A stretch of 64,000 nucleotides of DNA from Eutreptiella sp. 'Long Island Sound 2002' (lineage: Eukaryota > Protista > Euglenida), in NCBI GenBank assembly GCA_964036045.1, contig OZ038379.1, positions 13,020,001 to 13,084,000 of the forward strand, read 5' to 3'. The translations under genes and the position numbers were made by a program. The number at the start of each line of letters is the position of its first letter. Within the stretch, counting starts at the first letter, position 1. The notes under the pieces are model-generated. The model was not told the origin of the DNA and did not search any database. It saw only the letters and a list, made by a program, of their open reading frames with translations. Shown here in pieces: positions 147-64,000 of this stretch.

Positions 147-8213
<8,067 letters not shown>

Positions 8214-8262: not shown

Positions 8263-8349
8263 CCCAGGGCTGCCGGGTGTAAGCTGCGCCCATCGATCAG
8301 TGACGTGGGCGTCACCCGTGATACGTGTGGGACTGTTGGGCTCGGTCTG

Positions 8350-8403: not shown

Positions 8404-8445
8404 CCCATCGAACATAAAATGGGTTGGTTTGCAACACCGGAACTA

Positions 8446-9392: not shown

Positions 9393-11052
9393 ATTGAGGC
9401 CTTGCGGATCACAGCAGCGTAAAGCCATGGCATGATATCCACGTTGCTTATTGGGTAGATAGATTTACTAGTGTTGCATTTGTTCTTCAACCTGGATATG
9501 TCCATCACCACCCACATTCTATCTGCACATCTACCATATTGTATCATTGAAATATAATCGCAGCCACCAGCTGTGCAGATACTTTAGCCAACCCTTTCAC
9601 AGCGACTTGCAGATCCATCTTCCATTCGCCTTTCAGTCCAACAGGGAACACAATTGAAATCTTAGTTGGTCATCGAGCTGGGTAAGGTCTCATCATGGCG
9701 CTTACATAACACAAACACCTGCATCTGAACACAAAAAGTGTCACCAACAGCAAAGGCGTATCAGATTGAGGACTGGAAGAATGGGTCACATCATTGCTCA
9801 GCAACACTACTCATCATTCGCCACCAAGAAATAGCACCTGCAACATCCCAAACATCAATCTTTCGGAACATGCCTCCGGGAGGGCACACCCACACCTTGT
9901 GGCTCAATGAAAGAGTGTAACACAGCCAACACCAGTTCTACGCAATGCCACAAATTCCAATCTACAATGAGGTGATTCAGCAGTGGTTGAGGACATGTGG
10001 AACATCAGCAATCAGCAAATACACAAACTCATCACAACCTCAGTACGTGTAATGGCCATTGATGAAATGCTTAGGCAGTGGTTGAGGATTGTCTTGACAT
10101 CATGAACACAAATAGCATAAGTCCCCCTGACAGAAAGCTCACAGGCAGAGACTCTGTGTTGGCAAATACAAAACATAAATGCACTGTACAAATCAGACTG
10201 ACGTATGAAGCAACAACACATTCTAACCTCACATGTACAAACATGAAAAAATGCAAACACGGGACAAACCAAAAGAGCTGGCTAACCTAAATGGCACACG
10301 GAGTCAATTGTACGTCTTCTACGCAGCATAGCTAAGATTTGATCTTAAGTTGATTGTACCAACCTTTCACAAGAGAGAAACAAACTCCTAGCCAGCTACC
10401 ATGCATTGTGCCTTCACCACTCTTGGATGTTTTTTGTTTTGTCAGTGTGCCAGTCTGCTCTGTTAAAGCGAGATGTATCAATGATGAAAACCAAAACAGA
10501 CACAGTGTCACCTATGCAGCAGTGGTGCATGGCTGTGCAACTGCACCATCAGATTAGTCTGTCCTGCTTGGCTGGACCCTAGCACAGCAAACGTACCTTA
10601 CATTGCAACCATTGTGTGCATGTGCACAATGCAACAACACTATCTGCAATATACACAGACAACATTGCATCCCATCAGTCAATATTCGTTTAAGCATGTA
10701 TCGATCAGACAAATGCCTCAAAGCATCACATTTTCTTGGAACCCTTGGCCCACTGGGTTTTCTACACCCTACAGTGCACACTCAAAATCATCATCTATCT
10801 TCTGCAGCAACACATACCCCCATCTGATGACACCCAAACAACGACAACAAAGCAACGCATGGCCATGATGCAGGAATTGTGGCAGGAATGCTTTAACATC
10901 AAGCTTCAGCCACAAATTAAAATCCCCATTGCACAATATTACATCCAAATGTACAAATCAACAACCAAGTGTGACTCCTAACATCATGCCCCAAAAATAC
11001 AAGCAAGAAAGACACTTGGATACCCTGTTTCTGGATAAGGAGGTGCGATGTC

Positions 11053-11117
11053 TCAGTCCAACAGGGAACATAAGTAAAATCAATGGCACGTCATAGAGCT
11101 GGGTAAAATGTCATCCT
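11053..11117 (-). ncRNA. Box C/D snoRNA A (representative copy; one per unit), dual guide for LSU rRNA
   Basis: AGGATGA cattttACCCAGCTCt ATGA cgtgccattgattttacttatGTTCCCTGTTGGa CTGA. Guides are antisense to conserved LSU CYAAYAGGGAAC and GAGCUGGGU; the +5 rule gives yeast C2948 and A2934 equivalents. Confidence 0.9.
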
Positions 11118-11494
11118 CCCATCGAACATAAATTTGCAACACCGGAACTAGAAACATGCAAAAAAGAAAAGGGGATGCACACTTAAATCGTCAAGATCAA
11201 TCCACTAATCTCCATATCCACTGCACCACTGTTGTTGTTCTGTTCACATTGTCTCTCAAATGAACACAATGCCCTGTGAATCTCACGCTCAATGGGTCTA
11301 CCAAAGTGAGTCACTCACGTTGGTAACATTATTGTTAGATAGACATGTCATCATAGCTCAGCTACCTCAGCTACCGAGGCCTTGCAGATTACAGCAGCGT
11401 AAAGCCATGGCATGATATCCACGTTGCTTATTGGGCAGATAGATTTACTAGTGTTGCATTTGTTCTTCAACCTGGATATGTCCATCACCACCCA

Positions 11495-11561
11495 CATTCT
11501 ATCTGCACATCTACCATATTGTATAATTGAAATATAATCGCAGCCACCAGCTGTGCAGATA
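11495..11561 (-). ncRNA. Candidate single-hairpin AGA-box (H/ACA-like) pseudouridylation guide
   Basis: Minus: ATCTGCAC...GTGCAGAT AGA atg, a perfect 8-bp basal stem around an internal loop and an AU-rich upper stem, followed by AGA+3 nt. No target identified. Confidence 0.45.
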
Positions 11562-11612
11562 CTTTAGCCAACCCTTTCACAGCCACATGCAGATCCATCT
11601 TCCATTCGCCTT

Positions 11613-11676
11613 TCAGTCCAACAGGGAACACAATTGAAATCTTAGTTGGTCATCGAGCTGGGTAAGGTCTCATCAT
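11613..11676 (-). ncRNA. Box C/D snoRNA B (paralog of A; representative copy, first copy 9633-9696)
   Basis: ATGATGA gaccttACCCAGCTCg ATGA ccaactaagatttcaattgtGTTCCCTGTTGGa CTGA; same two guides and register as A with a diverged interior. Confidence 0.92.
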
Positions 11677-11740
11677 GGCGCTTACATAACACAAACACCT
11701 GCATCTGAACACAAAAAGTGTCACCAACAGCAAAGGCGTA

Positions 11741-11797
11741 TCAGATTGAGGACTGGAAGAATGGGTCACATCATTGCTCAGCAACACTACTCATCAT
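11741..11797 (-). ncRNA. Box C/D snoRNA C (representative copy)
   Basis: ATGATGA gtagtgttg CTGA gca ATGATGT gacccattcttcCAGTCCTCAAt CTGA: full C/D'/C'/D set. D guide is antisense to UUGAGGACUG, resembling the LSU segment that reads UUGAAGACUG in yeast (inferred). Confidence 0.78.
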
Positions 11798-11956
11798 TCG
11801 CCACCAAGAAATAGCACCTGCAACATCCCAAACATCAATCTTTCGGAACATGCCTCCGGGAGGGCACACCCACACCTTGTGGCTCAATGAAAGAGTGTAA
11901 CACAGCCAACACCAGTTCTACGCAATGCCACAAATTCCAATCTACAATGAGGTGAT

Positions 11957-12015
11957 TCAGCAGTGGTTGAGGACATGTGGAACATCAGCAATCAGCAAAT
12001 ACACAAACTCATCAC
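11957..12015 (-). ncRNA. Box C/D snoRNA D (representative copy)
   Basis: GTGATGA gtttgtgtatttg CTGA ttgc TGATGT tccacatgtcctcaaccactg CTGA. D' guide is antisense to (AG)CAAAUAY.CAAA of LSU rRNA just 3' of yeast Am1449/Gm1450. Confidence 0.78.
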
Positions 12016-12019
12016 AACC

Positions 12020-12083
12020 TCAGTACGTGTAATGGCCATTGATGAAATGCTTAGGCAGTGGTTGAGGATTGTCTTGACATCAT
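12020..12083 (-). ncRNA. Candidate box C/D snoRNA E (representative copy)
   Basis: ATGATGT caagacaaTCCTCAACCACTGc CTAA gcatttcatcaatggccattacacgta CTGA. Shares a 13-nt guide with D, placed before a D'-like CTAA; variant box C and no clear C'. Confidence 0.55.
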
Positions 12084-12684
12084 GAACACAAATAGCATAA
12101 GTCCCCCTGACAGAAAGCTCACAGGCAGAGACTCTGTGTTGGCAAATACAAAACATAAATGCACTGTACAAATCAGACTGACGTATGAAGCAACAACACA
12201 TTCTAACCTCACATGTACAAACATGAAAAAATGCAAACACGGGACAAACCAAAAGAGCTGGCTAACCTAAATGGCACACGGAGTCAATTGTACGTCTTCT
12301 ACGCAGCATAGCTAAGATTTGATCTTAAGTTGATTGTACTAACCTTTCACAAGAGAGAAACAAACTCCTAGCCAGCTACCATGCATTGTGCCTTCACCAC
12401 TCTTGGATGTTTTTTGTTTTGTCAGTGTGCCAGTCTGCTCTGTTAAAGCGAGATGTATCAATGATGAAAACCAAAACAGACACAGTGTCACCTATGCAGC
12501 AGTGGTGCATGGCTGTGCAACTGCACCATCAGATTAGTCTGTCCTGCTTGGCTGGACCCTAGCACAGCAAACGTACCTTACATTGCAACCATTGTGTGCA
12601 TGTGCACAATGCAACAACACTATCTGCAATATACACAGACAACATTGCATCCCATCAGTCAATATTCGTTTAAGCATGTATCGA

Positions 12685-12774
12685 TCAGACAAATGCCTCA
12701 AAGCATCACATTTTCTTGGAACCCTTGGCCCACTGGGTTTTCTACACCCTACAGTGCACACTCAAAATCATCAT
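12685..12774 (-). ncRNA. Box C/D snoRNA F (representative copy); snR13/SNORD15-like target
   Basis: ATGATGA...gcttt GAGGCATTTG t CTGA. The 10-nt guide is antisense to conserved LSU CAAAUGCCUC; +5 position is the yeast Am2281 equivalent. Confidence 0.85.
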
Positions 12775-12885
12775 CTATCTTCTGCAGCAACACATACCCC
12801 CATCTGATGACACCCAAACAACGACAACAAAGCAACGCATGGCCATGATGCAGGAATTGTGGCAGGAATGCTTTAACATCAAGCT

Positions 12886-12967
12886 TCAGCCACAAATTAA
12901 AATCCCCATTGCACAATATTACATCCAAATGTACAAATCAACAACCAAGTGTGACTCCTAACATCAT
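12886..12967 (-). ncRNA. Candidate box C/D snoRNA G (representative copy)
   Basis: ATGATGT taggagtcacacttggttg TTGA...tt TAATTTGTG g CTGA. The D guide can pair 9 nt (one G-U) with SSU CGCAAAUUA; +5 is the yeast Am436 equivalent (snR87/SNORD16 site). Short match. Confidence 0.55.
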
Positions 12968-15900
12968 GCCCCAAAAATACAAGCAAGAAAGACACTTGGA
13001 TACCCTGTTTCTGGATAAGGAGGTGCGATGTCTCAGTCCAACAGGGAACATAAGTAAAATCAATGGCACGTCATAGAGCTGGGTAAAATGTCATCCTCCC
13101 ATCGAACATAAATTTGCAACACCGGAACTAGAAACATGCAAAAAAGAAAAGGGGATGCACACTTAAATCGTCAAGATCAATCCACTAATCTCCATATCCA
13201 CTGCACCACTGTTGTTGTTCTGTTCACATTGTCTCTCAAATGAACACAATGCCCTGTGAATCTCACGCTCAATGGGTCTACCAAAGTGAGTCACTCACGT
13301 TGGTAACATTATTGTTAGATAGACATGTCATCATAGCTCAGCTACCTCAGCTACCGAGGCCTTGCAGATTACAGCAGCGTAAAGCCATGGCATGATATCC
13401 ACGTTGCTTATTGGGCAGATAGATTTACTAGTGTTGCATTTGTTCTTCAACCTGGATATGTCCATCACCACCCACATTCTATCTGCACATCTACCATATT
13501 GTATAATTGAAATATAATCGCAGCCACCAGCTGTGCAGATACTTTAGCCAACCCTTTCACAGCCACATGCAGATCCATCTTCCATTCACCTTTCAGTCCA
13601 ACAGGGAACACAATTGAAATCATAGTTGGTCATCGAGCTGGGTAAGGTCTCATCATGGCGCTTACATAACACAAACACCTGCATCTGAACACAAAAAGTG
13701 TCACCAACAGCAAAGACGTATCAGATTGAGGACTGGAAGAATGGGTCACATCATTGCTCAGCAACACTACTCATCATTCGCCACCAAGAAATAGCACCTG
13801 CAACATCCCAAACATCGATCTTTCGGAACATGCCTCCGGGAGGGCACATCCACACCTTGTGGCTCAATGAAAGAGTGTAACACAGCCAACACCAGTTCTA
13901 CGCAATGCCACAAATCCCAATCTACAATGAGGTGATTCAGCAGTGGTTGAGGACATGTGGAACATCAGCAATCAGCAAATACACAAACTCATCACAACCT
14001 CAGTACGTGTAATGGCCATTGATGAAATGCTTAGGCAGTGGTTGAGGATTGTCTTGACATCATGAACACAAATAGCATAAGTCCCCCTGACAGAAAGCTC
14101 ACAGGCAGAGACTCTGTGTTGGCAAATACAAAACATAAATGCACTGTACAAATCAGACTGACGTATGAAGCAACAACACATTCTAACCTCACATGTACAA
14201 ACATGAACAAATGCAAACACTGGACAAACCAAAAGAGCTGGCTAACCTAAATGGCACACGGAGTCAATTGTACGTCTTTTACGCAACATAGCTAAGATTT
14301 GATTGTACCAACCTTTCACAAGAGAGAAACAAACTCCTAGCCAGCTACCATGCATTGTGCATCTGAAAGCCTTCACCACTCTTGGATGTTTTTTGTTTTG
14401 TCAGTGTGCCAGTCTGCTCTGTTAAAGCGAGATGTATCAATGATGAAAACCAAAACAGACACAGTGTCACCTATGCAGCAGTGGTGCATGGCTGTGCAAC
14501 TGCACCATCAGATTAGTCTGTCCTGCTTGGCTGGACCCTAGCACAGCAAACGTACCTTACATTGCAACCATTGTGTGCATGTGCACAATGCAACAACACT
14601 ATCTGCAATATACACAGACAACATTGCATCCCATCAGTCAATATTCGTTTAAGCATGTATCGATCAGACAAATGCCTCAAAGCATCACATTTTCTTGGAA
14701 CCCTTGGCCCACTGGGTTTTCTACACTCTACAGTGCACACTCAAAATCATCATCTATCTTCTGCAGCAACACATACCCCCATCTGATGACACCCAAACAA
14801 CGACAACAAAGCAACGCATGGCCATGATGCAGGAATTGTGGCAGGAATGGTTTAACATCAAGCTTCAGCTACAAATTAAAATCCCCATTGCACAATATTA
14901 CATCCAAATGTACAAATCAACAACCAAGTGTAACTCCTCACATCATGCCCCAAAAATACAAGCAAGAAAGACACTTGGATACCCTGTTTCTGGATAAGGA
15001 GGTGCGATGTCTCAGTCCAACAGGGAACATAAGTAAAATCAATGGCACGTCATAGAGCTGGGTAAAATGTCATCCTCCCATCGAACATAAATTTGCAACA
15101 CCGGAACTAGAAACATGCAAAAAAGAAAAGGGGATGCACACTTAAATCGTCAAGATCAATCCACTAATCTCCATATCCACTGCACCACTGTTGTTGTTCT
15201 GTTCACATTGTCTCTCAAATGAACACAATGCCCTGTGAATCTCACGCTCAATGGGTCTACCAAAGTGAGTCACTCACGTTGGTAACATTATTGTTAGATA
15301 GACATGTCATCATAGCTCAGCTACCTCAGCTACCGAGGCCTTGCGGATCACAGCAGCGTAAAGCCATGGCATGATATCCACGTTGCTTATTGGGTAGATA
15401 GATTTACTAGTGTTGCATTTGTTCTTCAACCTGGATATGTCCATCACCACCCACATTCTATCTGCACATCTACCATTTTGTATAATTGAAATATAATCGC
15501 AGCCACCAGCTGTGCAGATACTTTAGCCAACCCTTTCACAGCCACATACAGATCCATCTTCCATTCGCCTTTCAGTCCAACAGGGAACACAATTGAAATC
15601 TTAGTTGGTCATCGAGCTGGGTAAGGTCTCATCATGGCGCTTACATAACACAAACAACTGCATCTGAACACAAAAAGTGTCACCAACAGCAAAGGCGTAT
15701 CAGATTGAGGACTGGAAGAATGGGTCACATCATTGCTCAGCAACACTACTCATCATTCGCCACCAAGAAATAGCACCTGCAACATCCCAAACATCAATCT
15801 TTCGGAACATGCCTCCGGGAGGGCACACCCACACCTTGTGGCTCAATGAAAGAGTGTAACACAGCCAACACCAGTTCTACGCAATGCCACAAATCCCAAT

Positions 15901-16073
15901 CTACAATGAGGTGATTCAGCAGTGGTTGAGGACATGTGGAACATCAGCAATCAGCAAATACACAAACTCATCACAACCTCAGTACGTGTAATGGCCATTG
16001 ATGAAATGCTTAGGCAGTGGTTGAGGATTGTCTTGACATCATGAACACAAATAGCATAAGTCCCCCTGACAGA

Positions 16074-16180
16074 AGCTACTTGGTGGCCTTAGCCAAGGGC
16101 TTGTGGCATTCTCAAGAGTATCTCCACATTCCTTGTGTGGCCACCTACAGATCCGCACACCTGACCCACACTTGGTGCCC
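16074..16180. other. 107-bp optional hairpin-forming cassette (first of 13 consecutive copies; last at 41179-41285)
   Basis: Short allele gacaga|aagctcac versus long gacaga[agctacttgg...tgccc]aagctcac; nested stems GGTGGCC/GGCCACC, CAAGG/CCTTG, TGTGG/CCACA. Confidence 0.9.
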
Positions 16181-19100
16181 AAGCTCACAGGCAGAGACTC
16201 TGTGTTGGCAAATACAAAACATAAATGCACTGTACAAATCAGACTGACGTATGAAGCAACAACACATTCTAACCTCACATGTACAAACATGAAAAAATGC
16301 AAACACTGGACAAACCAAAAGAGCTGGCTAACCTAAATGGCACACGGAGTCAATTGTACGTCTTTTACGCAACATAGCTAAGATTTGATTGTACCAACCT
16401 TTCACAAGAGAGAAACAAACTCCTAGCCAGCTACCATGCATTGTGCATCTGAAAGCCTTCACCACTCTTGGATGTTTTTTGTTTTGTCAGTGTGCCAGTC
16501 TGCTCTGTTAAAGCGAGATGTATCAATGATGAAAACCAAAACAGACACAGTGTCACCTATGCAGCAGTGGTGCATGGCTGTGCAACTGCACCATCAGATT
16601 AGTCTGTCCTGCTTGGCTGGACCCTAGCACAGCAAACGTACCTTACATTGCAACCATTGTGTGCATGTGCACAATGCAACAACACTATCTGCAATATACA
16701 CAGACAACATTGCATCCCATCAGTCAATATTCGTTTAAGCATGTATCGATCAGACAAATGCCTCAAAGCATCACATTTTCTTGGAACCCTTGGCCCACTG
16801 GGTTTTCTACACTCTACAGTGCACACTCAAAATCATCATCTATCTTCTGCAGCAACACATACCCCCATCTGATGACACCCAAACAACGACAACAAAGCAA
16901 CGCATGGCCATGATGCAGGAATTGTGGCAGGAATGGTTTAACATCAAGCTTCAGCTACAAATTAAAATCCCCATTGCACAATATTACATCCAAATGTACA
17001 AATCAACAACCAAGTGTAACTCCTCACATCATGCCCCAAAAATACAAGCAAGAAAGACACTTGGATACCCTGTTTCTGGATAAGGAGGTGCGATGTCTCA
17101 GTCCAACAGGGAACATAAGTAAAATCAATGGCACGTCATAGAGCTGGGTAAAATGTCATCCTCCCATCGAACATAAATTTGCAACACCGGAACTAGAAAC
17201 ATGCAAAAAAGAAAAGGGGATGCACACTTAAATCGTCAAGATCAATCCACTAATCTCCATATCCACTGCACCACTGTTGTTGTTCTGTTCACATTGTCTC
17301 TCAAATGAACACAATGCCCTGTGAATCTCACGCTCAATGGGTCTACCAAAGTGAGTCACTCACGTTGGTAACATTATTGTTAGATAGACATGTCATCATA
17401 GCTCAGCTACCTCAGCTACCGAGGCCTTGCAGATTACAGCAGCGTAAAGCCATGGCATGATATCCACGTTGCTTATTGGGTAGATAGATTTACTAGTGTT
17501 GCATTTGTTCTTCAACCTGGATATGTCCATCACCACCCACATTCTATCTGCACATCTACCATTTTGTATAATTGAAATATAATCGCAGCCACCAGCTGTG
17601 CAGATACTTTAGCCAACCCTTTCACAGCCACATACAGATCCATCTTCCATTCGCCTTTCAGTCCAACAGGGAACACAATTGAAATCTTAGTTGGTCATCG
17701 AGCTGGGTAAGGTCTCATCATGGCGCTTACATAACACAAACAACTGCATCTGAACACAAAAAGTGTCACCAACAGCAAAGGCGTATCAGATTGAGGACTG
17801 GAAGAATGGGTCACATCATTGCTCAGCAACACTACTCATCATTCGCCACCAAGAAATAGCACCTGCAACATCCCAAACATCAATCTTTCGGAACATGCCT
17901 CCGGGAGGGCACACCCACACCTTGTGGCTCAATGAAAGAGTGTAACACAGCCAACACCAGTTCTACGCAATGCCACAAATCCCAATCTACAATGAGGTGA
18001 TTCAGCAGTGGTTGAGGACATGTGGAACATCAGCAATCAGCAAATACACAAACTCATCACAACCTCAGTACGTGTAATGGCCATTGATGAAATGCTTAGG
18101 CAGTGGTTGAGGATTGTCTTGACATCATGAACACAAATAGCATAAGTCCCCCTGACAGAAGCTACTTGGTGGCCTTAGCCAAGGGCTTGTGGCATTCTCA
18201 AGAGTATCTCCACATTCCTTGTGTGGCCACCTACAGATCCGCACACCTGACCCACACTTGGTGCCCAAGCTCACAGGCAGAGACTCTGTGTTGGCAAATA
18301 CAAAACATAAATGCACTGTACAAATCAGACTGACGTATGAAGCAACAACACATTCTAACCTCACATGTACAAACATGAAAAAATGCAAACACTGGACAAA
18401 CCAAAAGAGCTGGCTAACCTAAATGGCACACGGAGTCAATTGTACGTCTTTTACGCAACATAGCTAAGATTTGATTGTACCAACCTTTCACAAGAGAGAA
18501 ACAAACTCCTAGCCAGCTACCATGCATTGTGCATCTGAAAGCCTTCACCACTCTTGGATGTTTTTTGTTTTGTCAGTGTGCCAGTCTGCTCTGTTAAAGC
18601 GAGATGTATCAATGATGAAAACCAAAACAGACACAGTGTCACCTATGCAGCAGTGGTGCATGGCTGTCCAACTACACCATCAGATTAGTCTGTCCTGCTT
18701 GGCTGGACCCTAGCACAGCAAACGTACCTTACATTGCAACCATTGTGTGCATGTGCACAATGCAACAACACTATCTGCAATATACACAGACAACATTGCA
18801 TCCCATCAGTCAATATTCGTTTAAGCATGTATCGATCAGACAAATGCCTCAAAGCATCACATTTTCTTGGAACCCTTGGCCCACTGGGTTTTCTACACCC
18901 TACAGTGCACACTCAAAATCATCATCTATCTTCTACAGCAACACATACCCCCATCTGATGACACCCAAACAACGACAACAAAGCAACGCATGGCCATGAT
19001 GCAGGAATTGTGGCAGGAATGGTTTAACATCAAGCTTCAGCCACAAATTAAAATCCCCATTGCACAATATTACATCCAAATGTACAAATCAACAACCAAG

Positions 19101-22100: not shown

Positions 22101-25100
22101 TCAATGAAAGAGTGTAACACAGCCAACACCAGTTCTACGCAATGCCACAAATCCCAATCTACAATGAGGTGATTCAGCAGTGGTTGAGGACATGTGGAAC
22201 ATCAGCAATCAGCAAATACACAAACTCATCACAACCTCAGTACGTGTAATGGCCAGTGATGAAATGCTTAGGCAGTGGTTGAGGATTGTCTTGACATCAT
22301 GAACACAAATAGCATAAGTCCCCCTGACAGAAGCTACTTGGTGGCCTTAGCCAAGGGCTTGTGGCATTCTCAAGAGTATCTCCACATTCCTTGTGTGGCC
22401 ACCTACAGATCCGCACACCTGACCCACACTTGGTGCCCAAGCTCACAGGCAGAGACTCTGTGTTGGCAAATACAAAACATAAATGCACTGTACAAATCAG
22501 ACTGACGTATGAAGCAACAACACATTCTAACCTCACATGTACAAACATGAAAAAATGCAAACACTGGACAAACCAAAAGAGCTGGCTAACCTAAATGGCA
22601 CACGGAGTCAATTGTACGTCTTTTACGCAACATAGCTAAGATTTGATTGTACCAACCTTTCACAAGAGAGAAACAAACTCCTAGCCAGCTACCATGCATT
22701 GTGCATCTGAAAGCCTTCACCACTCTTGGATGTTTTTTGTTTTGTCAGTGTGCCAGTCTGCTCTGTTAAAGCGAGATGTATCAATGATGAAAACCACAAC
22801 AGACACAGTGTCACCTATGCAGCAGTGGTGCATGGCTGTGCACCTACACCATCAGATTAGTCTGTCCTGCTTGGCTGGACCCTAGCACAGCAAACGTACC
22901 TTACATTGCAACCATTGTGTGCATGTGCACAATGCAACAACACTATCTGCAATATACACAGACAACATTGCATCCCATCAGTCAATATTCGTTTAAGCAT
23001 GTATCGATCAGACAAATGCCTCAAAGCATCACATTTTCTTGGAACCCTTGGCCCACTGGTTTTTCTACACCCTACAGTGCACACTCAAAATCATCATCTA
23101 TCTTCTACAGCAACACATACCCCCATCTGATGACACCCAAACAACGACAACAAAGCAACGCATGGCCATGATGCAGGAATTGTGGCAGGAATGGTTTAAC
23201 ATCAAGCTTCAGCTACAAATTAAAATCCCCATTGCACAATATTACATCCAAATGTACAAATCAACAACCAAGTGTAACTCCTAACATCATGCCCCAAAAA
23301 TACAAGCAAGAAAGACACTTGGATACCCTGTTTCTGGATAAGGAGGTGCGATGTCTCAGTCCAACAGGGAACATAAGTAAAATCAATGGCACGTCATAGA
23401 GCTGGGTAAAATGTCATCCTCCCATCGAACATAAATTTGCAACACCGGAACTAGAAATATGCAAAAAAGAAAAGGGGATGCACACTTAAATCGTCAAGAT
23501 CAATCCACTAATCTCCATATCCACTGTACCACTGTTGTTGTTCTGTTCACATTGTCTCTCAAATGAACACAATGCCCTGTGAATCTCACGCTCAATGGGT
23601 CTACCAAAGTGAGTCACTCACGTTGGTAACATTATTGTTAGATAGACATGTCATCATAGCTCAGCTACCTCAGCTACCGAGGCCTTGCAGATTACAGCAG
23701 CGTAAAGCCATGGCATGATATCCACGTTGCTTATTGGGTAGATAGATTTACTAGTGTTGCATTTGTTCTTCAACCTGGATATGTCCATCACCACCCACAT
23801 TCTATCTGCACATCTACCATTTTGTATAATTGAAATATAATCGCAGCCACCAGCTGTGCAGATACTTTAGCCAATCCTTTCACAGCCACATGCAGATCCA
23901 TCTTCCATTCACCTTTCAGTCCAACAGGGAACACAATTGAAATCATAGTTGGTCATCGAGCTGGGTAAGGTCTCATCATGGCGCTTACATAACAGAAACA
24001 CCTGCATCTGAACACAAAAAGTGTCACCAACAGCAAAGACGTATCAGATTGAGGACTGGAAGAATGGGTCACATCATTGCTCAGCAACACTACTCATCAT
24101 TCGCCACCAAGAAATAGCACCTGCAACATCCCAAACATCAATCTTTCGGAACATGCCCCCGGGAGGGCACACCCACACCTTGTGGCTCAATGAAAGAGTG
24201 TAACACAGCCAACACCAGTTCTACGCAATGCCACAAATCCCAATCTACAATGAGGTGATTCAGCAGTGGTTGAGGACATGTGGAACATCAGCAATCAGCA
24301 AATACACAAACTCATCACAACCTCAGTACGTGTAATGGCCAGTGATGAAATGCTTAGGCAGTGGTTGAGGATTGTCTTGACATCATGAACACAAATAGCA
24401 TAAGTCCCCCTGACAGAAGCTACTTGGTGGCCTTAGCCAAGGGCTTGTGGCATTCTCAAGAGTATCTCCACATTCCTTGTGTGGCCACCTACAGATCCGC
24501 ACACCTGACCCACACTTGGTGCCCAAGCTCACAGGCAGAGACTCTGTGTTGGCAAATACAAAACATAAATGCACTGTACAAATCAGACTGACGTATGAAG
24601 CAACAACACATTCTAACCTCACATGTACAAACATGAAAAAATGCAAACACTGGACAAACCAAAAGAGCTGGCTAACCTAAATGGCACACGGAGTCAATTG
24701 TACGTCTTTTACGCAACATAGCTAAGATTTGATTGTACCAACCTTTCACAAGAGAGAAACAAACTCCTAGCCAGCTACCATGCATTGTGCATCTGAAAGC
24801 CTTCACCACTCTTGGATGTTTTTTGTTTTGTCAGTGTGCCAGTCTGCTCTGTTAAAGCGAGATGTATCAATGATGAAAACCACAACAGACACAGTGTCAC
24901 CTATGCAGCAGTGGTGCATGGCTGTGCACCTACACCATCAGATTAGTCTGTCCTGCTTGGCTGGACCCTAGCACAGCAAACGTACCTTACATTGCAACCA
25001 TTGTGTGCATGTGCACAATGCAACAACACTATCTGCAATATACACAGACAACATTGCATCCCATCAGTCAATATTCGTTTAAGCATGTATCGATCAGACA

Positions 25101-28100
25101 AATGCCTCAAAGCATCACATTTTCTTGGAACCCTTGGCCCACTGGTTTTTCTACACCCTACAGTGCACACTCAAAATCATCATCTATCTTCTACAGCAAC
25201 ACATACCCCCATCTGATGACACCCAAACAACGACAACAAAGCAACGCATGGCCATGATGCAGGAATTGTGGCAGGAATGGTTTAACATCAAGCTTCAGCT
25301 ACAAATTAAAATCCCCATTGCACAATATTACATCCAAATGTACAAATCAACAACCAAGTGTAACTCCTAACATCATGCCCCAAAAATACAAGCAAGAAAG
25401 ACACTTGGATACCCTGTTTCTGGATAAGGAGGTGCGATGTCTCAGTCCAACAGGGAACATAAGTAAAATCAATGGCACGTCATAGAGCTGGGTAAAATGT
25501 CATCCTCCCATCGAACATAAATTTGCAACACCGGAACTAGAAATATGCAAAAAAGAAAAGGGGATGCACACTTAAATCGTCAAGATCAATCCACTAATCT
25601 CCATATCCACTGCACCACTGTTGTTGTTCTGTTCACATTGTCTCTCAAATGAACACAATGCCCTGTGAATCTCACGCTCAATGGGTCTACCAAAGTGAGT
25701 CACTCACGTTGGTAACATTATTGTTAGATAGACATGTCATCATAGCTCAGCTACCTCAGCTACCGAGGCCTTGCAGATTACAGCAGCGTAAAGCCATGGC
25801 ATGATATCCACGTTGCTTACTGGGCAGATAGATTTACTAGTGTTGCATTTGTTCTTCAACCTGGATATGTCCATCACCACCCACATTCTATCTGCACATC
25901 TACCATTTTGTATAATTGAAATATAATCGCAGCCACCAGCTGTGCAGATACTTTAGCCAATCCTTTCACAGCCACATGCAGATCCATCTTCCATTCGCCT
26001 TTCAGTCCAACAGGGAACACAATTGAAATCATAGTTGGTCATCGAGCTGGGTAAGGTCTCATCATGGCGCTTACATAACAGAAACACCTGCATCTGAACA
26101 CAAAAAGTGTCACCAACAGCAAAGGCGTATCAGATTGAGGACTGGAAGAATGGGTCACATCATTGCTCAGCAACACTACTCATCATTCGCCACCAAGAAA
26201 TAGCACCTGCAACATCCCAAACATCGATCTTTCGGAACATGCCCCCGGGAGGGCACATCCACACCTTGTGGCTCAATGAAAGAGTGTAACACAGCCAACA
26301 CCAGTTCTACGCAATGCCACAAATCCCAATCTCCAATGAGGTGATTCAGCAGTGGTTGAGGACATGTGGAACATCAGCAATCAGCAAATACACAAACTCA
26401 TCACAACCTCAGTACGTGTAATGGCCAGTGATGAAATGCTTAGGCAGTGGTTGAGGATTGTCTTGACATCATGAACACAAATAGCATAAGTCCCCCTGAC
26501 AGAAGCTACTTGGTGGCCTTAGCCAAGGGCTTGTGGCATTCTCAAGAGTATCTCCACATTCCTTGTGTGGCCACCTACAGATCCGCACACCTGACCCACA
26601 CTTGGTGCCCAAGCTCACAGGCAGAGACTCTGTGTTGGCAAATACAAAACATAAATGCACTGTACAAATCAGACTGACGTATGAAGCAACAACACATTCT
26701 AACCTCACATGTACAAACATGAAAAAATGCAAACACTGGACAAACCAAAAGAGCTGGCTAACCTAAATGGCACACGGAGTCAATTGTACGTCTTTTACGC
26801 AAAATAGCTAAGATTTGATCTTAAGTTGATTGTACCAACCTTTCACAAGAGAGAAACAAACTCCTAGCCAGCTACCATGCATTGTGCATCTGAAAGCCTT
26901 CACCACTCTTGGATGTTTTTTGTTTTGTCAGTGTGCCAGTCTGCTCTGTTAAAGCGAGATGTATCAATGATGAAAACCACAACAGACACAGTGTCACCTA
27001 TGCAGCAGTGGTGCATGGCTGTGCACCTACACCATCAGATTAGTCTGTCCTGCTTGGCTGGACCCTAGCACAGCAAACGTACCTTACATTGCAACCATTG
27101 TGTGCATGTGCACAATGCAACAACACTATCTGCAATATACATAGACAACATTGCATCCCATCAGTCAATATTCGTTTAAGCATGTATCGATCAGACAAAT
27201 GCCTCAAAGCATCACATTTTCTTGGAACCCTTGGCCCACTGGTTTTTCTACACCCTACAGTGCACACTCAAAATCATCATCTATCTTCTACAGCAACACA
27301 TACCCCCATCTGATGACACCCAAACAACGACAACAAAGCAACGCATGGCCATGATGCAGGAATTGTGGCAGGAATGGTTTAACATCAAGCTTCAGCTACA
27401 AATTAAAATCCCCATTGCACAATATTACATCCAAATGTACAAATCAACAACCAAGTGTAACTCCTAACATCATGCCCCAAAAATACAAGCAAGAAAGACA
27501 CTTGGATACCCTGTTTCTGGATAAGGAGGTGCGATGTCTCAGTCCAACAGGGAACATAAGTAAAATCAATGGCACGTCATAGAGCTGGGTAAAATGTCAT
27601 CCTCCCATCGAACATAAATTTGCAACACCGGAACTAGAAATATGCAAAAAAGAAAAGGGGATGCACACTTAAATCGTCAAGATCAATCCACTAATCTCCA
27701 TATCCACTGTACCACTGTTGTTGTTCTGTTCACATTGTCTCTCAAATGAACACAATGCCCTGTGAATCTCACGCTCAATGGGTCTACCAAAGTGAGTCAC
27801 TCACGTTGGTAACATTATTGTTAGATAGACATGTCATCATAGCTCAGCTACCTCAGCTACCGAGGCCTTGCGGATCACAGCAGCGTAAAGCCATGGCATG
27901 ATATCCACGTTGCTTATTGGGTAGATAGATTTACTAGTGTTGCATTTGTTCTTCAACCTGGATATGTCCATCACCACCCACATTCTATCTGCACATCTAC
28001 CATATTGTATCATTGAAATATAATCGCAGCCACCAGCTGTGCAGATACTTTAGCCAACCCTTTCACAGCCACATGCAGATCCATCTTCCATTCGCCTTTC

Positions 28101-55100: not shown

Positions 55101-58100
55101 TGTCTTGACATCATGAACACAAATAGCATAAGTCCCCCTGACAGAAAGCTCACAGGCAGAGACTCTGTGTTGGCAAATACAAAACATAAATGCACTGTAC
55201 AAATCAGACTGACGTATGAAGCAACAACACATTCTAACCTCACATGTACAAACATGAAAAAATGCAAACACGGGACAAACCAAAAGAGCTGGCTAACCTA
55301 AATGGCACACGGAGTCAATTGTACGTCTTTTACGCAACATAGCTAAGATTTGATTGTACCAACCTTTCACAAGAGAGAAACAAACTCCTAGACAGCTACC
55401 ATGCATTGTGCATCTGAAAGCCTTCACCACTCTTGGATGTTTTTTGTTTTGTCAGTGTGCCAGTCTGCTCTGTTAAAGCGAGATGTATCAATGATGAAAA
55501 CCAAAACAGACACAGTGTCACCTATGCAGCAGTGGTGCATGGCTGTGCACCTACACCATCAGATTAGTCTGTCCTGCTTGGCTGGACCCTAGCACAGCAA
55601 ACGTACCTTACATTGCAACCATTGTGTGCATGTGCACAATGCAACAACACTATCTGCAATATACACAGACAACATTGCATCCCATCAGTCAATATTCGTT
55701 TAAGCATGTATCGATCAGACAAATGCCTCAAAGCATCACATTTTCTTGGAACCCTTGGCCCACTGGGTTTTCTACACCCTACAGTGCACACTCAAAATCA
55801 TCATCTATCTTCTACAGCAACACATACCCCCATCTGATGACACCCAAACAACGACAACAAAGCAACGCATGGCCATGATGCAGGAATTGTGGCAGGAATG
55901 CTTTAACATCAAGCTTCAGCTACAAATTAAAATCCCCATTGCACAATATTACATCCAAATGTACAAATCAACAACCAAGTGTGACTCCTAACATCATGCC
56001 CTAAAAATACAAGCAAGAAAGACACTTGGATACCCTGTTTCTGGATGAGGAGGTGCGATGTCTCAGTCCAACAGGGAACATAAGTAAAATCAATGGCACG
56101 TCATAGAGCTGGGTAAAATGTCCTCCTCCCATCGAACATAAATTTGCAACACCGGAACTAGAAATATGCAAAAAAGAAAAGGGGATGCACACTTAAATCG
56201 TCAAGATCAATCCACTAATCTCCATATCCACTGCACCACTGTTGTTGTTCTGTTCACATTGTCTCTCAAATGAACACAATGCCCTGTGAATCTCATGCTC
56301 AATGGGTCTACCAAAGTGAGTCACTCACGTTGGTAACATTATTGTTAGATAGACATGTCATCATAGCTCAGCTACCTCAGCTACCGAGGCCTTGCGGATC
56401 ACAGCAGCGTAAAGCCATGGCATGATATCCACGTTGCTTATTGGGTAGATAGATTTACTAGTGTTGCATTTGTTCTTCAACCTGGATATGTCCATCACCA
56501 CCCACATTCTATCTGCACATCTACCATATTGTATAATTGAAATATAATCGCAGCCACCAGCTGTGCAGATACTTTAGCCAACCCTTTCACAGCCACATGC
56601 AGATCCATCTTCCATTCGCCTTTCAGTCCAACAGGGAACACAATTGAAATCTTAGTTGGTCATCGAGCTGGGTAAGGTCTCATCATGGCGCTTACATAAC
56701 ACAAACAACTGCATCCGAACACAAAAAGTGTCACCAACAGCAAAGACGTATCAGATTGAGGACTGGAAGAATGGGTCACATCATTGCTCAGCAACACTAC
56801 TCATCATTCGCCACCAAGAAATAGCACCTGCAACATCCCAAACATCGATCTTTCGGAACATGCCTCCGGGAGGGCACACCCACACCTTGTGGCTCAATGA
56901 AAGAGTGTAACACAGCCAACACCAGTTCTACGCAATGCCACAAATCCCAATCTACAATGAGGTGATTCAGCAGTGGTTGAGGACATGTGGAACATCAGCA
57001 ATCAGCAAATACACAAACTCATCACAACCTCAGTACGTGTAATGGCCATTGATGAAATGCTTAGGCAGTGGTTCAGGATTGTCTTGACATCATGAACACA
57101 AATAGCATAAGTCCCCCTGACAGAAAGCTCACAGGCAGAGACTCTGTGTTGGCAAATACAAAACATAAATGCACTGTACAAATCAGACTGACGTATGAAG
57201 CAACAACACATTCTAACCTCACATGTACAAACATGAAAAAATGCAAACACTGGACAAACCAAAAGAGCTGGCTAACCTAAATGGCACACGGAGTCAATTG
57301 TACGTCTTTTACGCAACATAGCTAAGATTTGATTGTACCAACCTTTCACAAGAGAGAAACAAACTCCTAGACAGCTACCATGCATTGTGCATCTGAAAGC
57401 CTTCACCACTCTTGGATGTTTTTTGTTTTGTCAGTGTGCCAGTCTGCTCTGTTAAAGCGAGATGTATCAATGATGAAAACCAAAACAGACACAGTGTCAC
57501 CTATGCAGCAGTGGTGCATGGCTGTGCACCTACACCATCAGATTAGTCTGTCCTGCTTGGCTGGACCCTAGCACAGCAAACGTACCTTACATTGCAACCA
57601 TTGTGTGCATGTGCACAATGCAACAACACTATCTGCAATATACACAGACAACATTGCATCCCATCAGTCAATATTCGTTTAAGCATGTATCGATCAGACA
57701 AATGCCTCAAAGCATCACATTTTCTTGGAACCCTTGGCCCACTGGGTTTTCTACACCCTACAGTGCACACTCAAAATCATCATCTATCTTCTACAGCAAC
57801 ACATACCCCCATCTGATGACACCCAAACAACGACAACAAAGCAACGCATGGCCATGATGCAGGAATTGTGGCAGGAATGGTTTAACATCAAGCTTCAGCT
57901 ACAAATTAAAATCCCCATTGCACAATATTACATCCAAATGTACAAATCAACAACCAAGTGTGACTCCTAACATCATGCCCCAAAAATACAAGCAAGAAAG
58001 ACACTTGGATACCCTGTTTCTGGATGAGGAGGTGCGATGTCTCAGTCCAACAGGGAACATAAGTAAAATCAATGGCACGTCATAGAGCTGGGTAAAATGT

Positions 58101-61100
58101 CATCCTCCCATCGAACATAAATTTGCAACACCGGAACTAGAAATATGCAAAAAAGAAAAGGGGATGCACACTTAAATCGTCAAGATCAATCCACTAATCT
58201 CCATATCCACTGCACCACTGTTGTTGTTCTGTTCACATTGTCTCTCAAATGAACACAATGCCCTGTGAATCTCACGCTCAATGGGTCTACCAAAGTGAGT
58301 CACTCACGTTGGTAACATTACTGTTAGATAGACATGTCATCATAGCTCAGCTACCTCAGCTACCGAGGCCTTGCGGATCACAGCAGCGTAAAGCCATGGC
58401 ATGATATCCACGTTGCTTATTGGGTAGATAGATTTACTAGTGTTGCATTTGTTCTTCAACCTGGATATGTCCATCACCACCCACATTCTATCTGCACATC
58501 TACCATATTGTATAATTGAAATATAATCGCAGCCACCAGCTGTGCAGATACTTTAGCCAACCCTTTCACAGCCACATGCAGATCCATCTTCCATTCGCCT
58601 TTCAGTCCAACAGGGAACACAATTGAAATCATAGTTGGTCATCGAGCTGGGTAAGGTCTCATCATGGCGCTTACATAACACAAACAACTGCATCCGAACA
58701 CAAAAAGTGTCACCAACAGCAAAGACGTATCAGATTGAGGACTGGAAGAATGGGTCACATCATTGCTCAGCAACACTACTCATCATTCGCCACCAAGAAA
58801 TAGCACCTGCAACATCCCAAACATCGATCTTTCGGAACATGCCTCCGGGAGGGCACACCCACACCTTGTGGCTCAATGAAAGAGTGTAACACAGCCAACA
58901 CCAGTTCTACGCAATGCCACAAATCCCAATCTACAATGAGGTGATTCAGCAGTGGTTGAGGACATGTGGAACATCAGCAATCAGCAAATACACAAACTCA
59001 TCACAACCTCAGTACGTGTAATGGCCATTGATGAAATGCTTAGGCAGTGGTTCAGGATTGTCTTGACATCATGAACACAAATAGCATAAGTCCCCCTGAC
59101 AGAAAGCTCACAGGCAGAGACTCTGTGTTGGCAAATACAAAACATAAATGCACTGTACAAATCAGACTGACATATGAAGCAACAACACATTCTAACCTCA
59201 CATGTACAAACATGAAAAAATGCAAACACTGGACAAACCAAAAGAGCTGGCTAACCTAAATGGCACACGGAGTCAATTGTACGTCTTTTACGCAACATAG
59301 CTAAGATTTGATTGTACCAACCTTTCACAAGAGAGAAACAAACTCCTAGACAGCTACCATGCATTGTGCATCTGAAAGCCTTCACCACTCTTGGATGTTT
59401 TTTGTTTTGTCAGTGTGCCAGTCTGCTCTGTTAAAGCGAGATGTATCAATGATGAAAACCAAAACAGACACAGTGTCACCTATGCAGCAGTGGTGCATGG
59501 CTGTGCACCTACACCATCAGATTAGTCTGTCCTGCTTGGCTGGACCCTAGCACAGCAAACGTACCTTACATTGCAACCATTGTGTGCATGTGCACAATGC
59601 AACAACACTATCTGCAATATACACAGACAACATTGCATCCCATCAGTCAATATTCGTTTAAGCATGTATCGATCAGACAAATGCCTCAAAGCATCACATT
59701 TTCTTGGAACCCTTGGCCCACTGGGTTTTCTACACCCTACAGTGCACACTCAAAATCATCATCTATCTTCTACAGCAACACATACCCCCATCTGATGACA
59801 CCCAAACAACGACAACAAAGCAACGCATGGCCATGATGCAGGAATTGTGGCAGGAATGGTTTAACATCAAGCTTCAGCTACAAATTAAAATCCCCATTGC
59901 ACAATATTACATCCAAATGTACAAATCAACAACCAAGTGTGACTCCTAACATCATGCCCCAAAAATACAAGCAAGAAAGACACTTGGATACCCTGTTTCT
60001 GGATGAGGAGGTGCGATGTCTCAGTCCAACAGGGAACATAAGTAAAATCAATGGCACGTCATAGAGCTGGGTAAAATGTCATCCTCCCATCGAACATAAA
60101 TTTGCAACACCGGAACTAGAAATATGCAAAAAAGAAAAGGGGATGCACACTTAAATCGTCAAGATCAATCCACTAATCTCCATATCCACTGCACCACTGT
60201 TGTTGTTCTGTTCACATTGTCTCTCAAATGAACACAATGCCCTGTGAATCTCACGCTCAATGGGTCTACCAAAGTGAGTCACTCACGTTGGTAACATTAC
60301 TGTTAGATAGACATGTCATCATAGCTCAGCTACCTCAGCTACCGAGGCCTTGCGGATCACAGCAGCGTAAAGCCATGGCATGATATCCACGTTGCTTATT
60401 GGGTAGATAGATTTACTAGTGTTGCATTTGTTCTTCAACCTGGATATGTCCATCACCACCCACATTCTATCTGCACATCTACCATATTGTATAATTGAAA
60501 TATAATCGCAGCCACCAGCTGTGCAGATACTTTAGCCAACCCTTTCACAGCCACATGCAGATCCATCTTCCATTCGCCTTTCAGTCCAACAGGGAACACA
60601 ATTGAAATCATAGTTGGTCATCGAGCTGGGTAAGGTCTCATCATGGCGCTTACATAACACAAACAACTGCATCCGAACACAAAAAGTGTCACCAACAGCA
60701 AAGACGTATCAGATTGAGGACTGGAAGAATGGGTCACATCATTGCTCAGCAACACTACTCATCATTCGCCACCAAGAAATAGCACCTGCAACATCCCAAA
60801 CATCGATCTTTCGGAACATGCCTCCGGGAGGGCACACCCACACCTTGTGGCTCAATGAAAGAGTGTAACACAGCCAACACCAGTTCTACGCAATGCCACA
60901 AATCCCAATCTACAATGAGGTGATTCAGCAGTGGTTGAGGACATGTGGAACATCAGCAATCAGCAAATACACAAACTCATCACAACCTCAGTACGTGTAA
61001 TGGCCATTGATGAAATGCTTAGGCAGTGGTTGAGGATTGTCTTGACATCATGAACACAAATAGCATAAGTCCCCCTGACAGAAAGCTCACAGGCAGAGAC

Positions 61101-64000
61101 TCTGTGTTGGCAAATACAAAACATAAATGCACTGTACAAATCAGACTGACGTATGAAGCAACAACACATTCTAACCTCACATGTACAAACATGAAAAAAT
61201 GCAAACACGGGACAAACCAAAAGAGCTGGCTAACCTAAATGGCACACGGAGTCAATTGTACGTCTTTTACGCAACATAGCTAAGATTTGATTGTACCAAC
61301 CTTTCACAAGAGAGAAACAAACTCCTAGACAGCTACCATGCATTGTGCATCTGAAAGCCTTCACCACTCTTGGATGTTTTTTGTTTTGTCAGTGTGCCAG
61401 TCTGCTCTGTTAAAGCGAGATGTATCAATGATGAAAACCAAAACAGACACAGTGTCACCTATGCAGCAGTGGTGCATGGCTGTGCACCTACACCATCAGA
61501 TTAGTCTGTCCTGCTTGGCTGGACCCTAGCACAGCAAACGTACCTTACATTGCAACCATTGTGTGCATGTGCACAATGCAACAACACTATCTGCAATATA
61601 CACAGACAACATTGCATCCCATCAGTCAATATTCGTTTAAGCATGTATCGATCAGACAAATGCCTCAAAGCATCACATTTTCTTGGAACCCTTGGCCCAC
61701 TGGTTTTTCTACACCCTACAGTGCACACTCAAAATCATCATCTATCTTCTACAGCAACACATACCCCCATCTGATGACACCCAAACAACGACAACAAAGC
61801 AACGCATGGCCATGATGCAGGAATTGTGGCAGGAATGGTTTAACATCAAGCTTCAGCTACAAATTAAAATCCCCATTGCACAATATTACATCCAAATGTA
61901 CAAATCAACAACCAAGTGTGACTCCTAACATCATGCCCTAAAAATACAAGCAAGAAAGACACTTGGATACCCTGTTTCTGGATAAGGAGGTGCGATGTCT
62001 CAGTCCAACAGGGAACATAAGTAAAATCAATGGCACGTCATAGAGCTGGGTAAAATGTCATCCTCCCATCGAACATAAATTTGCAACACCGGAACTAGAA
62101 ATATGCAAAAAAGAAAAGGGGATGCACACTTAAATCGTCAAGATCAATCCACTAATCTCCATATCCACTGCACCACTGTTGTTGTTCTGTTCACATTGTC
62201 TCTCAAATGAACACAATGCCCTGTGAATCTCACGCTCAATGGGTCTACCAAAGTGAGTCACTCACGTTGGTAACATTACTGTTAGATAGACATGTCATCA
62301 CAGCTCAGCTACCTCAGCTACCGAGGCCTTGCGGATCACAGCAGCGTAAAGCCATGGCATGATATCCACGTTGCTTATTGGGTAGATAGATTTACTAGTG
62401 TTGCATTTGTTCTTCAACCTGGATATGTCCATCACCACCCACATTCTATCTGCACATCTACCATATTGTATCATTGAAATATAATCGCAGCCACCAGCTG
62501 TGCAGATACTTTAGCCAACCCTTTCACAGCCACATGCAGATCCATCTTCCATTCGCCTTTCAGTCCAACAGGGAACACAATTGAAATCATAGTTGGTCAT
62601 CGAGCTGGGTAAGGTCTCATCATGGCACTTACATAACACAAACACCTGCATCTGAACACAAAAAGTGTCACCAACAGCAAAGGCGTATCAGATTGAGGAC
62701 TGGAAGAATGGGTCACATCATTGCTCAGCAACACTACTCATCATTCGCCACCAAGAAATAGCACCTGCAACATCCCAAACATCGATCTTTCGGAACATGC
62801 CTCCGGGAGGGCACACCCACACCTTGTGGCTCAATGAAAGAGTGTAACACAGCCAACACCAGTTCTACGCAATGCCACAAATCCCAATCTCCAATGAGGT
62901 GATTCAGCAGTGGTTGAGGACATGTGGAACATCAGCAATCAGCAAATACACAAACTCATCACAACCTCAGTACGTGTAATGGCCATTGATGAAATGCTTA
63001 GGCAGTGGTTCAGGATTGTCTTGACATCATGAACACAAATAGCATAAGTCCCCCTGACAGAAAGCTCACAGGCAGAGACTCTGTGTTGGCAAATACAAAA
63101 CATAAATGCACTGTACAAATCAGACTGACATATGAAGCAACAACACATTCTAACCTCACATGTACAAACATGAAAAAATGCAAACACTGGACAAACCAAA
63201 AGAGCTGGCTAACCTAAATGGCACACGGAGTCAATTGTACGTCTTCTACGCAACATAGCTAAGATTTGATTGTACCAACCTTTCACAAGAGAGAAACAAA
63301 CTCCTAGACAGCTACCATGCATTGTGCATCTGAAAGCCTTCACCACTCTTGGATGTTTTTTGTTTTGTCAGTGTGCCAGTCTGCTCTGTTAAAGCGAGAT
63401 GTATCAATGATGAAAACCAAAACAGACACAGTGTCACCCATGCAGCAGTGGTGCATGGCTGTGCACCTACACCATCAGATTAGTCTGTCCTGCTTGGCTG
63501 GACCCTAGCACAGCAAACGTACCTTACATTGCAACCATTGTGTGCATGTGCACAATGCAACAACACTATCTGCAATATACACAGACAACATTGCATCCCA
63601 TCAGTCAATATTCGTTTAAGCATGTATCGATCAGACAAATGCCTCAAAGCATCACATTTTCTTGGAACCCTTGGCCCACTGGTTTTTCTACACCCTACAG
63701 TGCACACTCAAAATCATCATCTATCTTCTACAGCAACACATACCCCCATCTGATGACACCCAAACAACGACAACAAAGCAACGCATGGCCATGATGCAGG
63801 AATTGTGGCAGGAATGGTTTAACATCAAGCTTCAGCTACAAATTAAAATCCCCATTGCACAATATTACATCCAAATGTACAAATCAACAACCAAGTGTGA
63901 CTCCTAACATCATACCCTAAAAATACAAGCAAGAAAGACACTTGGATACCCTGTTTTTGGATAAGGAGGTGCGATGTCTCAGTCCAACAGGGAACATAAG

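Follow-up and report, generated by a model that had tools for sequence, protein, structure and literature searches.

What is a repeat of about 2 kb that fills most of a 64,000-nucleotide stretch of the genome of the euglenid Eutreptiella sp. 'Long Island Sound 2002': a macrosatellite, or a block of genes? The stretch covers positions 13,020,001 to 13,084,000 of contig OZ038379.1 (assembly GCA_964036045.1); it is called the window here, and all coordinates refer to it. Our analysis supports, with a probability of about 0.87, the reading that the region is a head-to-tail array of a ~2-kb polycistronic cluster of genes for small nucleolar RNAs (snoRNAs) of the box C/D type, eight per unit, acting as methylation guides for ribosomal RNA (rRNA). 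An amplified cluster of guide RNA genes on the minus strand had been proposed in an initial annotation of the locus, and this proposal is now supported by the boxes, by terminal stems, by three mapped sites of 2'-O-methylated nucleotides (Nm) and by a complementary DNA (cDNA) that carries a spliced leader (SL).

A long array of near-identical units

A repeat search of the window found 27 in-register, head-to-tail copies at 10410-63336, the last of them cut by the window end. Together with a decayed twenty-eighth unit, described below, they bear out the 27 or more near-identical 2-kb units of the initial annotation. The visible array extends from 8355 to 64000 on the minus strand, with transcription running from high to low coordinates; it spans more than 55 kb and is open at the right edge. 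The units measure 1975-2097 bp. The period is 1979/1980 bp in units 1-2 and 17-27, 2086 bp in units 3-7 and 2097 bp in units 8-14, and periods of 2093 and 1975 bp occur in a single unit each. Three indels account for these length classes: a segment of 107 nt, an indel of 11 nt and an indel of 4 nt. Of the 26 full units, 13 contain the 107-nt segment, which has AGCT microhomology at both ends and is without recognisable C/D or H/ACA boxes; it lies at 26505..26611 (minus strand) in the 2097-bp variant at 24799..26895 (minus strand), the reference unit to which all module coordinates refer. The array was missed by Tandem Repeats Finder because the maximum period of that program was 500. Its G+C content is a flat 43-44%, against 56-64% in the flank, and its skews are constant along its length. 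The longest open reading frame (ORF) in the unit has 87 amino acids, and a protein-coding reading was therefore rejected.

Pairwise identity between units is 98.5-99.2%, and no two are identical. Adjacent units differ less (15 substitutions) than units far apart (about 23-25), and some pairs have just 2 differences. There is also an alternation of two sets, one of units 9, 10 and 12 and one of units 11 and 13, the members of a set being only 2-5 differences apart. The graded similarity of neighbours, the near-identical pairs and the alternation together bear the marks of recent duplication at a local scale and of unequal exchange; the alternating sets in particular point to a recent duplication of two-unit blocks. 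The length variants form contiguous blocks between 14369 and 41570.

Eight box C/D modules on one strand

The consensus of 26 units contains eight box C/D modules of 59-90 nt (M1 to M8), all on the minus strand, and a doubtful ninth. The strand and the type of module had thus been rightly recognised in the initial annotation, and only its count of about seven per unit needs raising; the estimate of roughly 190 C/D genes in the window was a fair one, with 203 module copies recovered by strict patterns. A C box (RTGATGW) and a CTGA stand 40-110 nt apart six times on the minus strand and not once on the plus strand; the mean in shuffled units is 0.2. The boxes of M1, M2, M3, M4, M7 and M8 are canonical or deviate by one base, and those of M5 and M6 deviate further. 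M2, M3 and M7 match their pattern in 27 of 27 units, M3 is identical in all 27, and the boxes and the three verified guides discussed below are unchanged in nearly all copies. Terminal stems of 4-5 bp enclose M3, M4 and M6, and none was seen for M1, M2, M7 and M8. The unit has spacers of 154-718 nt, long for a euglenozoan cluster; M1 and M2 are only 4 nt apart.

Read in the direction of transcription, the first module of the reference unit is M1 (26409..26472), with C box ATGATGT, a degenerate D' box (CCTA or CTGC), D box CTGA and a guide core, CCTCAACCACTG, in common with M2. The latter (26346..26404) is compact at 59 nt and has C box GTGATGA, D' box CTGA, C' box CTGATGT and D box CTGA. M3 (26124..26191) is canonical (ATGATGA, CTGA, ATGATG, CTGA), with a 4-bp stem GGCG/CGCC. 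M4 (25996..26069), closed by a stem CGCC/GGCG, is a dual guide in which the D' guide CCCAGCTCG is followed by ATGA and the D guide GTTCCCTGTTGGA by CTGA. M5 (25672..25743) is C/D-like, with C box ATGATGA and GTGA at both the D' and the D positions. M6 (25435..25513), a paralogue of M4, repeats both of its guides and has a 5-bp stem CGATG/CATCG and a weak C box. This box (25500-25506) is polymorphic: 18-19 units have GGATGAC, and 7 have GGAGGAC, a form expected to abolish the K-turn, so that there may be M6 pseudogene copies within an otherwise intact array. M7 (25295..25376) has C box ATGATGT, C' box GGATGT, D box CTGA and an AT-rich D guide that varies among units. M8 (25094..25183) is 90 nt long, snR13/U15-like, with C box ATGATGA, C' box GTGATG, D box CTGA and the D guide TTGAGGCATTTGT. 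The doubtful module M9 (24831..24941) consists of an antisense to small-subunit (SSU) rRNA between a C-like CTGATGG and a D'-like CTGC. All nine lie on the minus strand.

A search of the unit against Rfam gave a divided answer: no match in the array reached a gathering threshold, and the weak matches were nearly all to C/D families on the minus strand. With E values up to 10, every match lay on that strand and all but one belonged to C/D families, the best scoring 17-22 bits. SNORD29 (clan) matched M4 and snoR69Y matched M6, both through the common CCCAGCUC guide; SNORD15 and U8 matched M8, and archaeal sR (C/D sRNA) families matched M3. In distant protists, guides that are short and evolve fast usually score below gathering, and a gathering score does not define the class.

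Guide elements and their rRNA targets

Which rRNA nucleotides would these modules address? We took the fifth paired nucleotide upstream of D or D' as the methylated residue. The three exact antisense elements reported beside D/D' boxes in the initial annotation were all found in place: GTTCCCTGTTGG(A) adjoins CTGA in M4 and M6, ACCCAGCTC stands one nucleotide before ATGA in the same two modules, and GAGGCATTTG(T) adjoins CTGA in M8. The predicted targets are the C of GAGCUGGG for the D' guide of M4, the second A of CCAACAGGGAAC for its D guide, and the third A of CCAAAUGCCUCG for the D guide of M8. Metagenome contigs were searched with a joint pattern for the M4 targets (CCAACAGGGAAC, two free bases, GAGCTGGGT), which matched in at least 120 eukaryotic ribosomal DNA (rDNA) contigs; the two M4 target sites are thus neighbours in large-subunit (LSU) rRNA. 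In these contigs the distance from the G of the A-loop UG to the A predicted for the D guide is 12 nt, and from this A to the C predicted for the D' guide 14 nt. The M8 target CAAATGCCTC is present in 66 contigs, about 665 nt upstream of the M4 targets, and the third A of CCAAAUGCCUCG sits 7 nt before a G.

The map of Nm sites in the LSU of Euglena gracilis includes Um3508, Gm3509, Am3521, Am3533, Cm3535 and Cm3546 in one region and Am2768, Am2769 and Gm2776 in the other (PMC7672448, Supplementary Table S5). By exact base and spacing (12 and 14 nt), the D guide of M4 and M6 falls on Am3521 and their D' guide on Cm3535; the D guide of M8 falls on Am2769, with which the 7-nt distance to Gm2776 agrees. 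Thus, three of the three testable guides land on mapped Nm sites, in an LSU of which a few percent of the residues are methylated. In yeast, the corresponding regions of the LSU map carry Um2921, Gm2922, Am2946, Cm2948 and Cm2959, and Am2280, Am2281 and Gm2288. We take Cm3535 to be the counterpart of yeast C2948 and Am2769 that of A2281, the two targets named in the initial annotation, which match the E. gracilis sites by exact spacing. The yeast counterpart of Am3521 is A2934, a residue not known to be modified there.

No euglenid rDNA occurred among the at least 120 eukaryotic rDNA contigs, none of which matches beyond the conserved guides, and no conserved rRNA target was found in them for M1, M2, M7 or the D' guides of M3 and M8. 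Two contigs contain the LSU segment UUUGAGGACUGGA, to which the complement of the M3 D guide is similar, and in six contigs the LSU sequence immediately 3' of the sarcin-ricin loop is similar, at 19 of 23 positions, to the complement of the first M5 guide. Such resemblances are as expected if these guides pair with lineage-specific rRNA segments, and are not proof of it. In M9, 13 nt are antisense to SSU AGUGGUGCAUGGC, or 16 nt if G:U pairs are counted; the target lies in the helix that carries Um1679 and Gm1681. Its boxes are degenerate and its D' box, CTGC, puts the fifth nucleotide on the G between these two sites; M9 was therefore left as a doubtful SSU guide.

The unit might instead be an ordinary non-genic satellite, with C/D-like motifs and rRNA antisense that arose by chance. 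Antisense 11-mers to conserved rRNA do occur in about 1.7 segments per shuffled unit, against 6 segments in the actual unit, 2 of which were forced by the search pattern, and no Rfam gathering score was reached. Further 11-nt antisense matches, in the interior of M4, at the unit start and in the 107-nt insert (the last to LSU GGCUUGUGGCA, presumably the region of the yeast pseudouridine-2826 equivalent), are at chance level once the two forced matches are discounted, and do not lie beside boxes; they were set aside as no evidence. Chance is at odds, however, with the six against zero C...D pairs on the two strands (0.2 expected), with antisense elements that adjoin D/D' boxes and predict three mapped Nm sites at the right base and exact spacing, with the stems that flank M3, M4 and M6, and with weak Rfam matches confined to one strand and nearly all to C/D families. 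The non-genic satellite is close to refuted.

Transcription and the spliced-leader cDNA

Sequencing runs that contain the unit include estuary metagenomes and metatranscriptomes, which hold about 0.6-0.8 of its words. Metatranscriptome contigs of up to 1484 nt are colinear with the unit and span several modules. The contigs of one further sequenced source are near-identical to the unit and hence uninformative on conservation.

A more specific trace comes from a 2013 RNA run, in which a 315-nt cDNA contig matches 11413-11705 (minus strand; M4 and about 190 nt downstream) and then continues into 22 foreign letters. The reverse complement of these letters is a modified SL primer, including an engineered T-to-C change in its T-run. 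This change was introduced by Kuo et al. 2013 in their SL primer for Eutreptiella, and their 454 library was made by random priming on RNA selected with oligo-dT, the SL primer serving for amplification (PMC3621762). Together with the estuarine origin of the runs above, the primer match identifies the source as most likely Eutreptiella sp., a marine or estuarine euglenid, and not E. gracilis. The cDNA joins the unit exactly after CTTTTTGTGTTCAG, a polypyrimidine tract with AG at 11705..11720 (minus strand), 25 nt upstream of M4. The acceptor AG is kept in most units and reads CGG in 4 of the 24 copies caught by the pattern. With 6 differences in 293 nt from the window copies, the cDNA stems from a different repeat copy. 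Mispriming is disfavoured, since the genomic sequence upstream of the junction is a poor match to the 3' end of the SL primer and no SL sequence is encoded within the 64-kb window. We therefore take the cDNA to represent a minus-strand transcript that was genuinely trans-spliced. From this junction, it is probable that the snoRNA precursor is trans-spliced with the SL and present in poly(A)-selected RNA.

Is the array nevertheless mostly silent, that is, a snoRNA cluster turned macrosatellite and decaying, with the working copies elsewhere and the RNA due to read-through or DNA carry-over? Several observations would suit this explanation: the modules show no depletion of substitutions relative to the spacers, the C box of M6 is destroyed in 7 units and the D boxes of M5 are non-canonical, the cDNA derives from another copy, and the RNA support consists of assembled contigs, no small-RNA library being among the runs that contain the unit. 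However, nearly all 27 copies have kept the C/D boxes and the three verified guides intact, with M2, M3 and M7 matching in every copy, a divergence between units of 1-1.5% is too low to show selection either way, and an SL-bearing cDNA of the minus strand from poly(A)-selected RNA exists. We therefore consider a silent, decaying array improbable.

If the array is a functional guide-RNA cluster, it would be transcribed, probably by RNA polymerase II (Pol II), into long precursors, which would be cleaved and, at least sometimes, trans-spliced with the SL and polyadenylated, as in trypanosomes. Once trimmed, the snoRNAs would join fibrillarin, Nop56, Nop58 and Snu13 in complexes that methylate pre-rRNA. 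Having so many copies might serve dosage, the rRNA being modified very heavily. Crossing-over of the unequal kind would homogenise the units and yield the blocks of length variants, and the within-unit duplications (M4/M6, M1/M2) may supply isoforms and raw material for new guide specificities. A stronger version, in which the whole array is one long Pol II unit, its precursor trans-spliced and polyadenylated between snoRNA genes and perhaps reading through into the acyltransferase-like gene downstream, is a tentative proposal, possible enough to be stated.

A number of points weigh against a functional array of rRNA guides. The modification map is experimental but was obtained in E. gracilis and not in Eutreptiella, and ten guide elements are without a verified target, the comparison having been made with eukaryotic rDNA contigs from organisms other than the host. 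M5 has GTGA instead of CTGA, and the weak C box of M6 is the one destroyed in 7 units; the lack of Rfam matches at gathering thresholds is to be counted here as well. The modules are not poorer in substitutions than the spacers (22/619 versus 63/1478, p = 0.54), and units that differ by only 1-1.5% have little power to reveal selection in either direction. On the RNA side, the long contigs from RNA libraries could be DNA carry-over, and the SL junction depends on one contig, whose library was made by PCR with a primer that contains the entire SL. The RNA data for the modules are assembled contigs, which give neither mature ends nor abundance.

Do the spacers hold other guides?

Spacers as long as these could house further genes, so that the unit would be a mixed cluster of more than eight genes, with single-hairpin AGA-box pseudouridine guides or other small RNAs between the C/D modules. 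Such mixing of C/D and H/ACA-like genes is the rule in trypanosomatids, and a 66-nt hairpin followed by AGA plus 3 nt is present at 25884-25949. The upper stem of this hairpin, however, lies 22 nt from the AGA and not 14-16 nt. Neither a scan for AGA hairpins, nor a bipartite-guide search (47 matches on the plus strand versus 49 on the minus strand), nor the folding z-scores of the spacers, unremarkable on both strands, revealed an excess of pseudouridine guides over the opposite strand. An apparent pseudouridine-guide match near LSU U2713 was rejected, as the site is Um and not pseudouridine. Additional genes in the spacers are, on these results, rather unlikely, though they deserve to be kept in view.

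The decayed end of the array and its flank

The 3' end of the array is formed by the twenty-eighth unit (8355..10409, minus strand), which has 78% identity to the others and retains M1-M4 intact. M5 is degenerate from about 9395, and the unit is truncated within M6, of which only the 5' half is left, near 8355. The array start at 9393 given by the initial annotation is apt in that identity collapses there, and falls short in that remnants reach down to about 8355. A foreign insert of about 660 bp interrupts this unit at about 8455-9120 and may be a small mobile element. The insert contains an 11-bp tandem repeat, CACAGCGCGGG, at 8459-8489, and the reverse complement of the motif recurs near 9085-9105, at its other end.

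On the same strand as the array lies a carnitine/choline O-acyltransferase-like gene (4897..7961, minus strand) of at least two coding exons. The exon at 4897-5565 matches Pfam PF00755 (E = 8e-31), and the N-terminus lies within the ORF at 7656-8315, the likely start codon being about 400 nt downstream of the array 3' end. To judge from this arrangement, read-through or co-transcription from the array into the gene would be possible. The GC-rich flank also contains microsatellites: a perfect (CA)49 at 2786-2884, a 12/24-bp CACAAT-type repeat at 2018-2118 and (ACCC)8 at 3585-3615.

Comparison with other snoRNA clusters

The closest parallel is found in E. gracilis, where Moore & Russell (2012) reportedly described snoRNA clusters that are tandemly repeated, and Russell, Schnare & Gray (2006) are said to have characterised compact C/D snoRNAs. 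In both cases the host is a euglenid with exceptionally modified rRNA as the target, several compact C/D genes lie on one strand, isoforms arise by local duplication and the clusters are repeated head to tail; there are also signs of long precursors, which in Eutreptiella are probable. In contrast to E. gracilis, from which the clusters are known as PCR products, the present array is seen in an assembly of chromosome scale, where at least 27 copies occupy more than 55 kb, and it belongs to Eutreptiella, an early-branching marine euglenophyte genus. The Eutreptiella spacers are also long, no pseudouridine guide was recognised in them, and the SL-bearing cDNA suggests trans-splicing of the precursor; we know of no report of snoRNA precursor trans-splicing in Euglena. 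Trypanosomatids (T. brucei, L. major, Leptomonas collosoma) share repeated clusters, polycistronic Pol II transcription and precursor processing, the last two of which are only presumed in Eutreptiella. Their clusters are, as far as is known, repeated fewer times, and they interleave C/D with single-hairpin H/ACA-like genes, whereas no H/ACA-like gene was recognised in the Eutreptiella unit. The passages on E. gracilis in two of the sources give clustered polycistronic snoRNA genes with isoforms as its organisation (PMC7671301, PMC2784804), and trypanosomatid snoRNA clusters are repeated, with precursors that are trans-spliced and polyadenylated (PMC3273796). The statement of the initial annotation that tandem polycistronic clusters are known from both groups agrees with this literature, the tandem repetition in E. 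gracilis being that reportedly described by Moore & Russell (2012).

At the level of single guides, yeast snR69 and plant snoR69Y (Cm2948), and yeast snR13 and human SNORD15 (Am2280/2281), address the same rRNA nucleotides as predicted here. The M4/M6 D' guide and the snoR69Y consensus have the same CCCAGCUC-N-AUGA arrangement, and the 3' end of M8 matches the SNORD15 model, with scores of M4, M6 and M8 against these models of about 20 bits versus gathering thresholds of 45-75 bits. Unlike snR69 and snoR69Y, M4 and M6 possess a second guide, directed at the A 14 nt upstream (Am3521 of E. gracilis), a site that to our knowledge is not methylated in yeast.

Large arrays of C/D genes are also found in mammals: SNORD115/SNORD116 and SNORD113/114 comprise tens of tandem copies over tens to hundreds of kb, processed from one long transcript. 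These have one snoRNA per repeat, lie in introns of a non-coding host gene, are orphan guides that lack rRNA targets and are imprinted. The Eutreptiella unit differs from these mammalian arrays in that it comprises eight different rRNA guides and shows no sign of introns. The initial annotation had spoken of an unusually large, rDNA-like amplification. The array is indeed large, but its novelty was overstated, since such clusters are the published norm and SNORD115/116 are of similar size. A literature search found no paper joining Eutreptiella and snoRNAs. The kind of locus is thus already known. Novelty may lie in the species, in the number of copies that an assembly shows, in the paralogous dual guides for the equivalents of Am3521 and Cm3535 and in the SL trans-splicing that the precursor probably undergoes.

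Implications for euglenid rRNA modification

Euglenid rRNA is the most heavily modified known, with 349 sites in E. gracilis (PMC7672448). The array does not overturn the current understanding of how such rRNA is served. It presents the guide-RNA supply of a second, distant euglenid genus, in the form of one eight-gene cluster copied at least 27 times, and it offers concrete guide-to-site assignments, among which the equivalent of Am3521 is a euglenid-type site aimed at by two paralogues per unit. It is also a warning to annotators that such 'macrosatellites' are genes. If the guide-array reading is true, and with the units that lie beyond the window, the locus would be among the largest rRNA-guide gene arrays described. 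Moreover, the cDNA with its SL is a hint that the trans-splicing of precursors seen in trypanosomes predates the kinetoplastids; a long SL-trans-spliced Pol II precursor, if confirmed, would place trypanosome-style processing of snoRNA precursors at the base of Euglenozoa.

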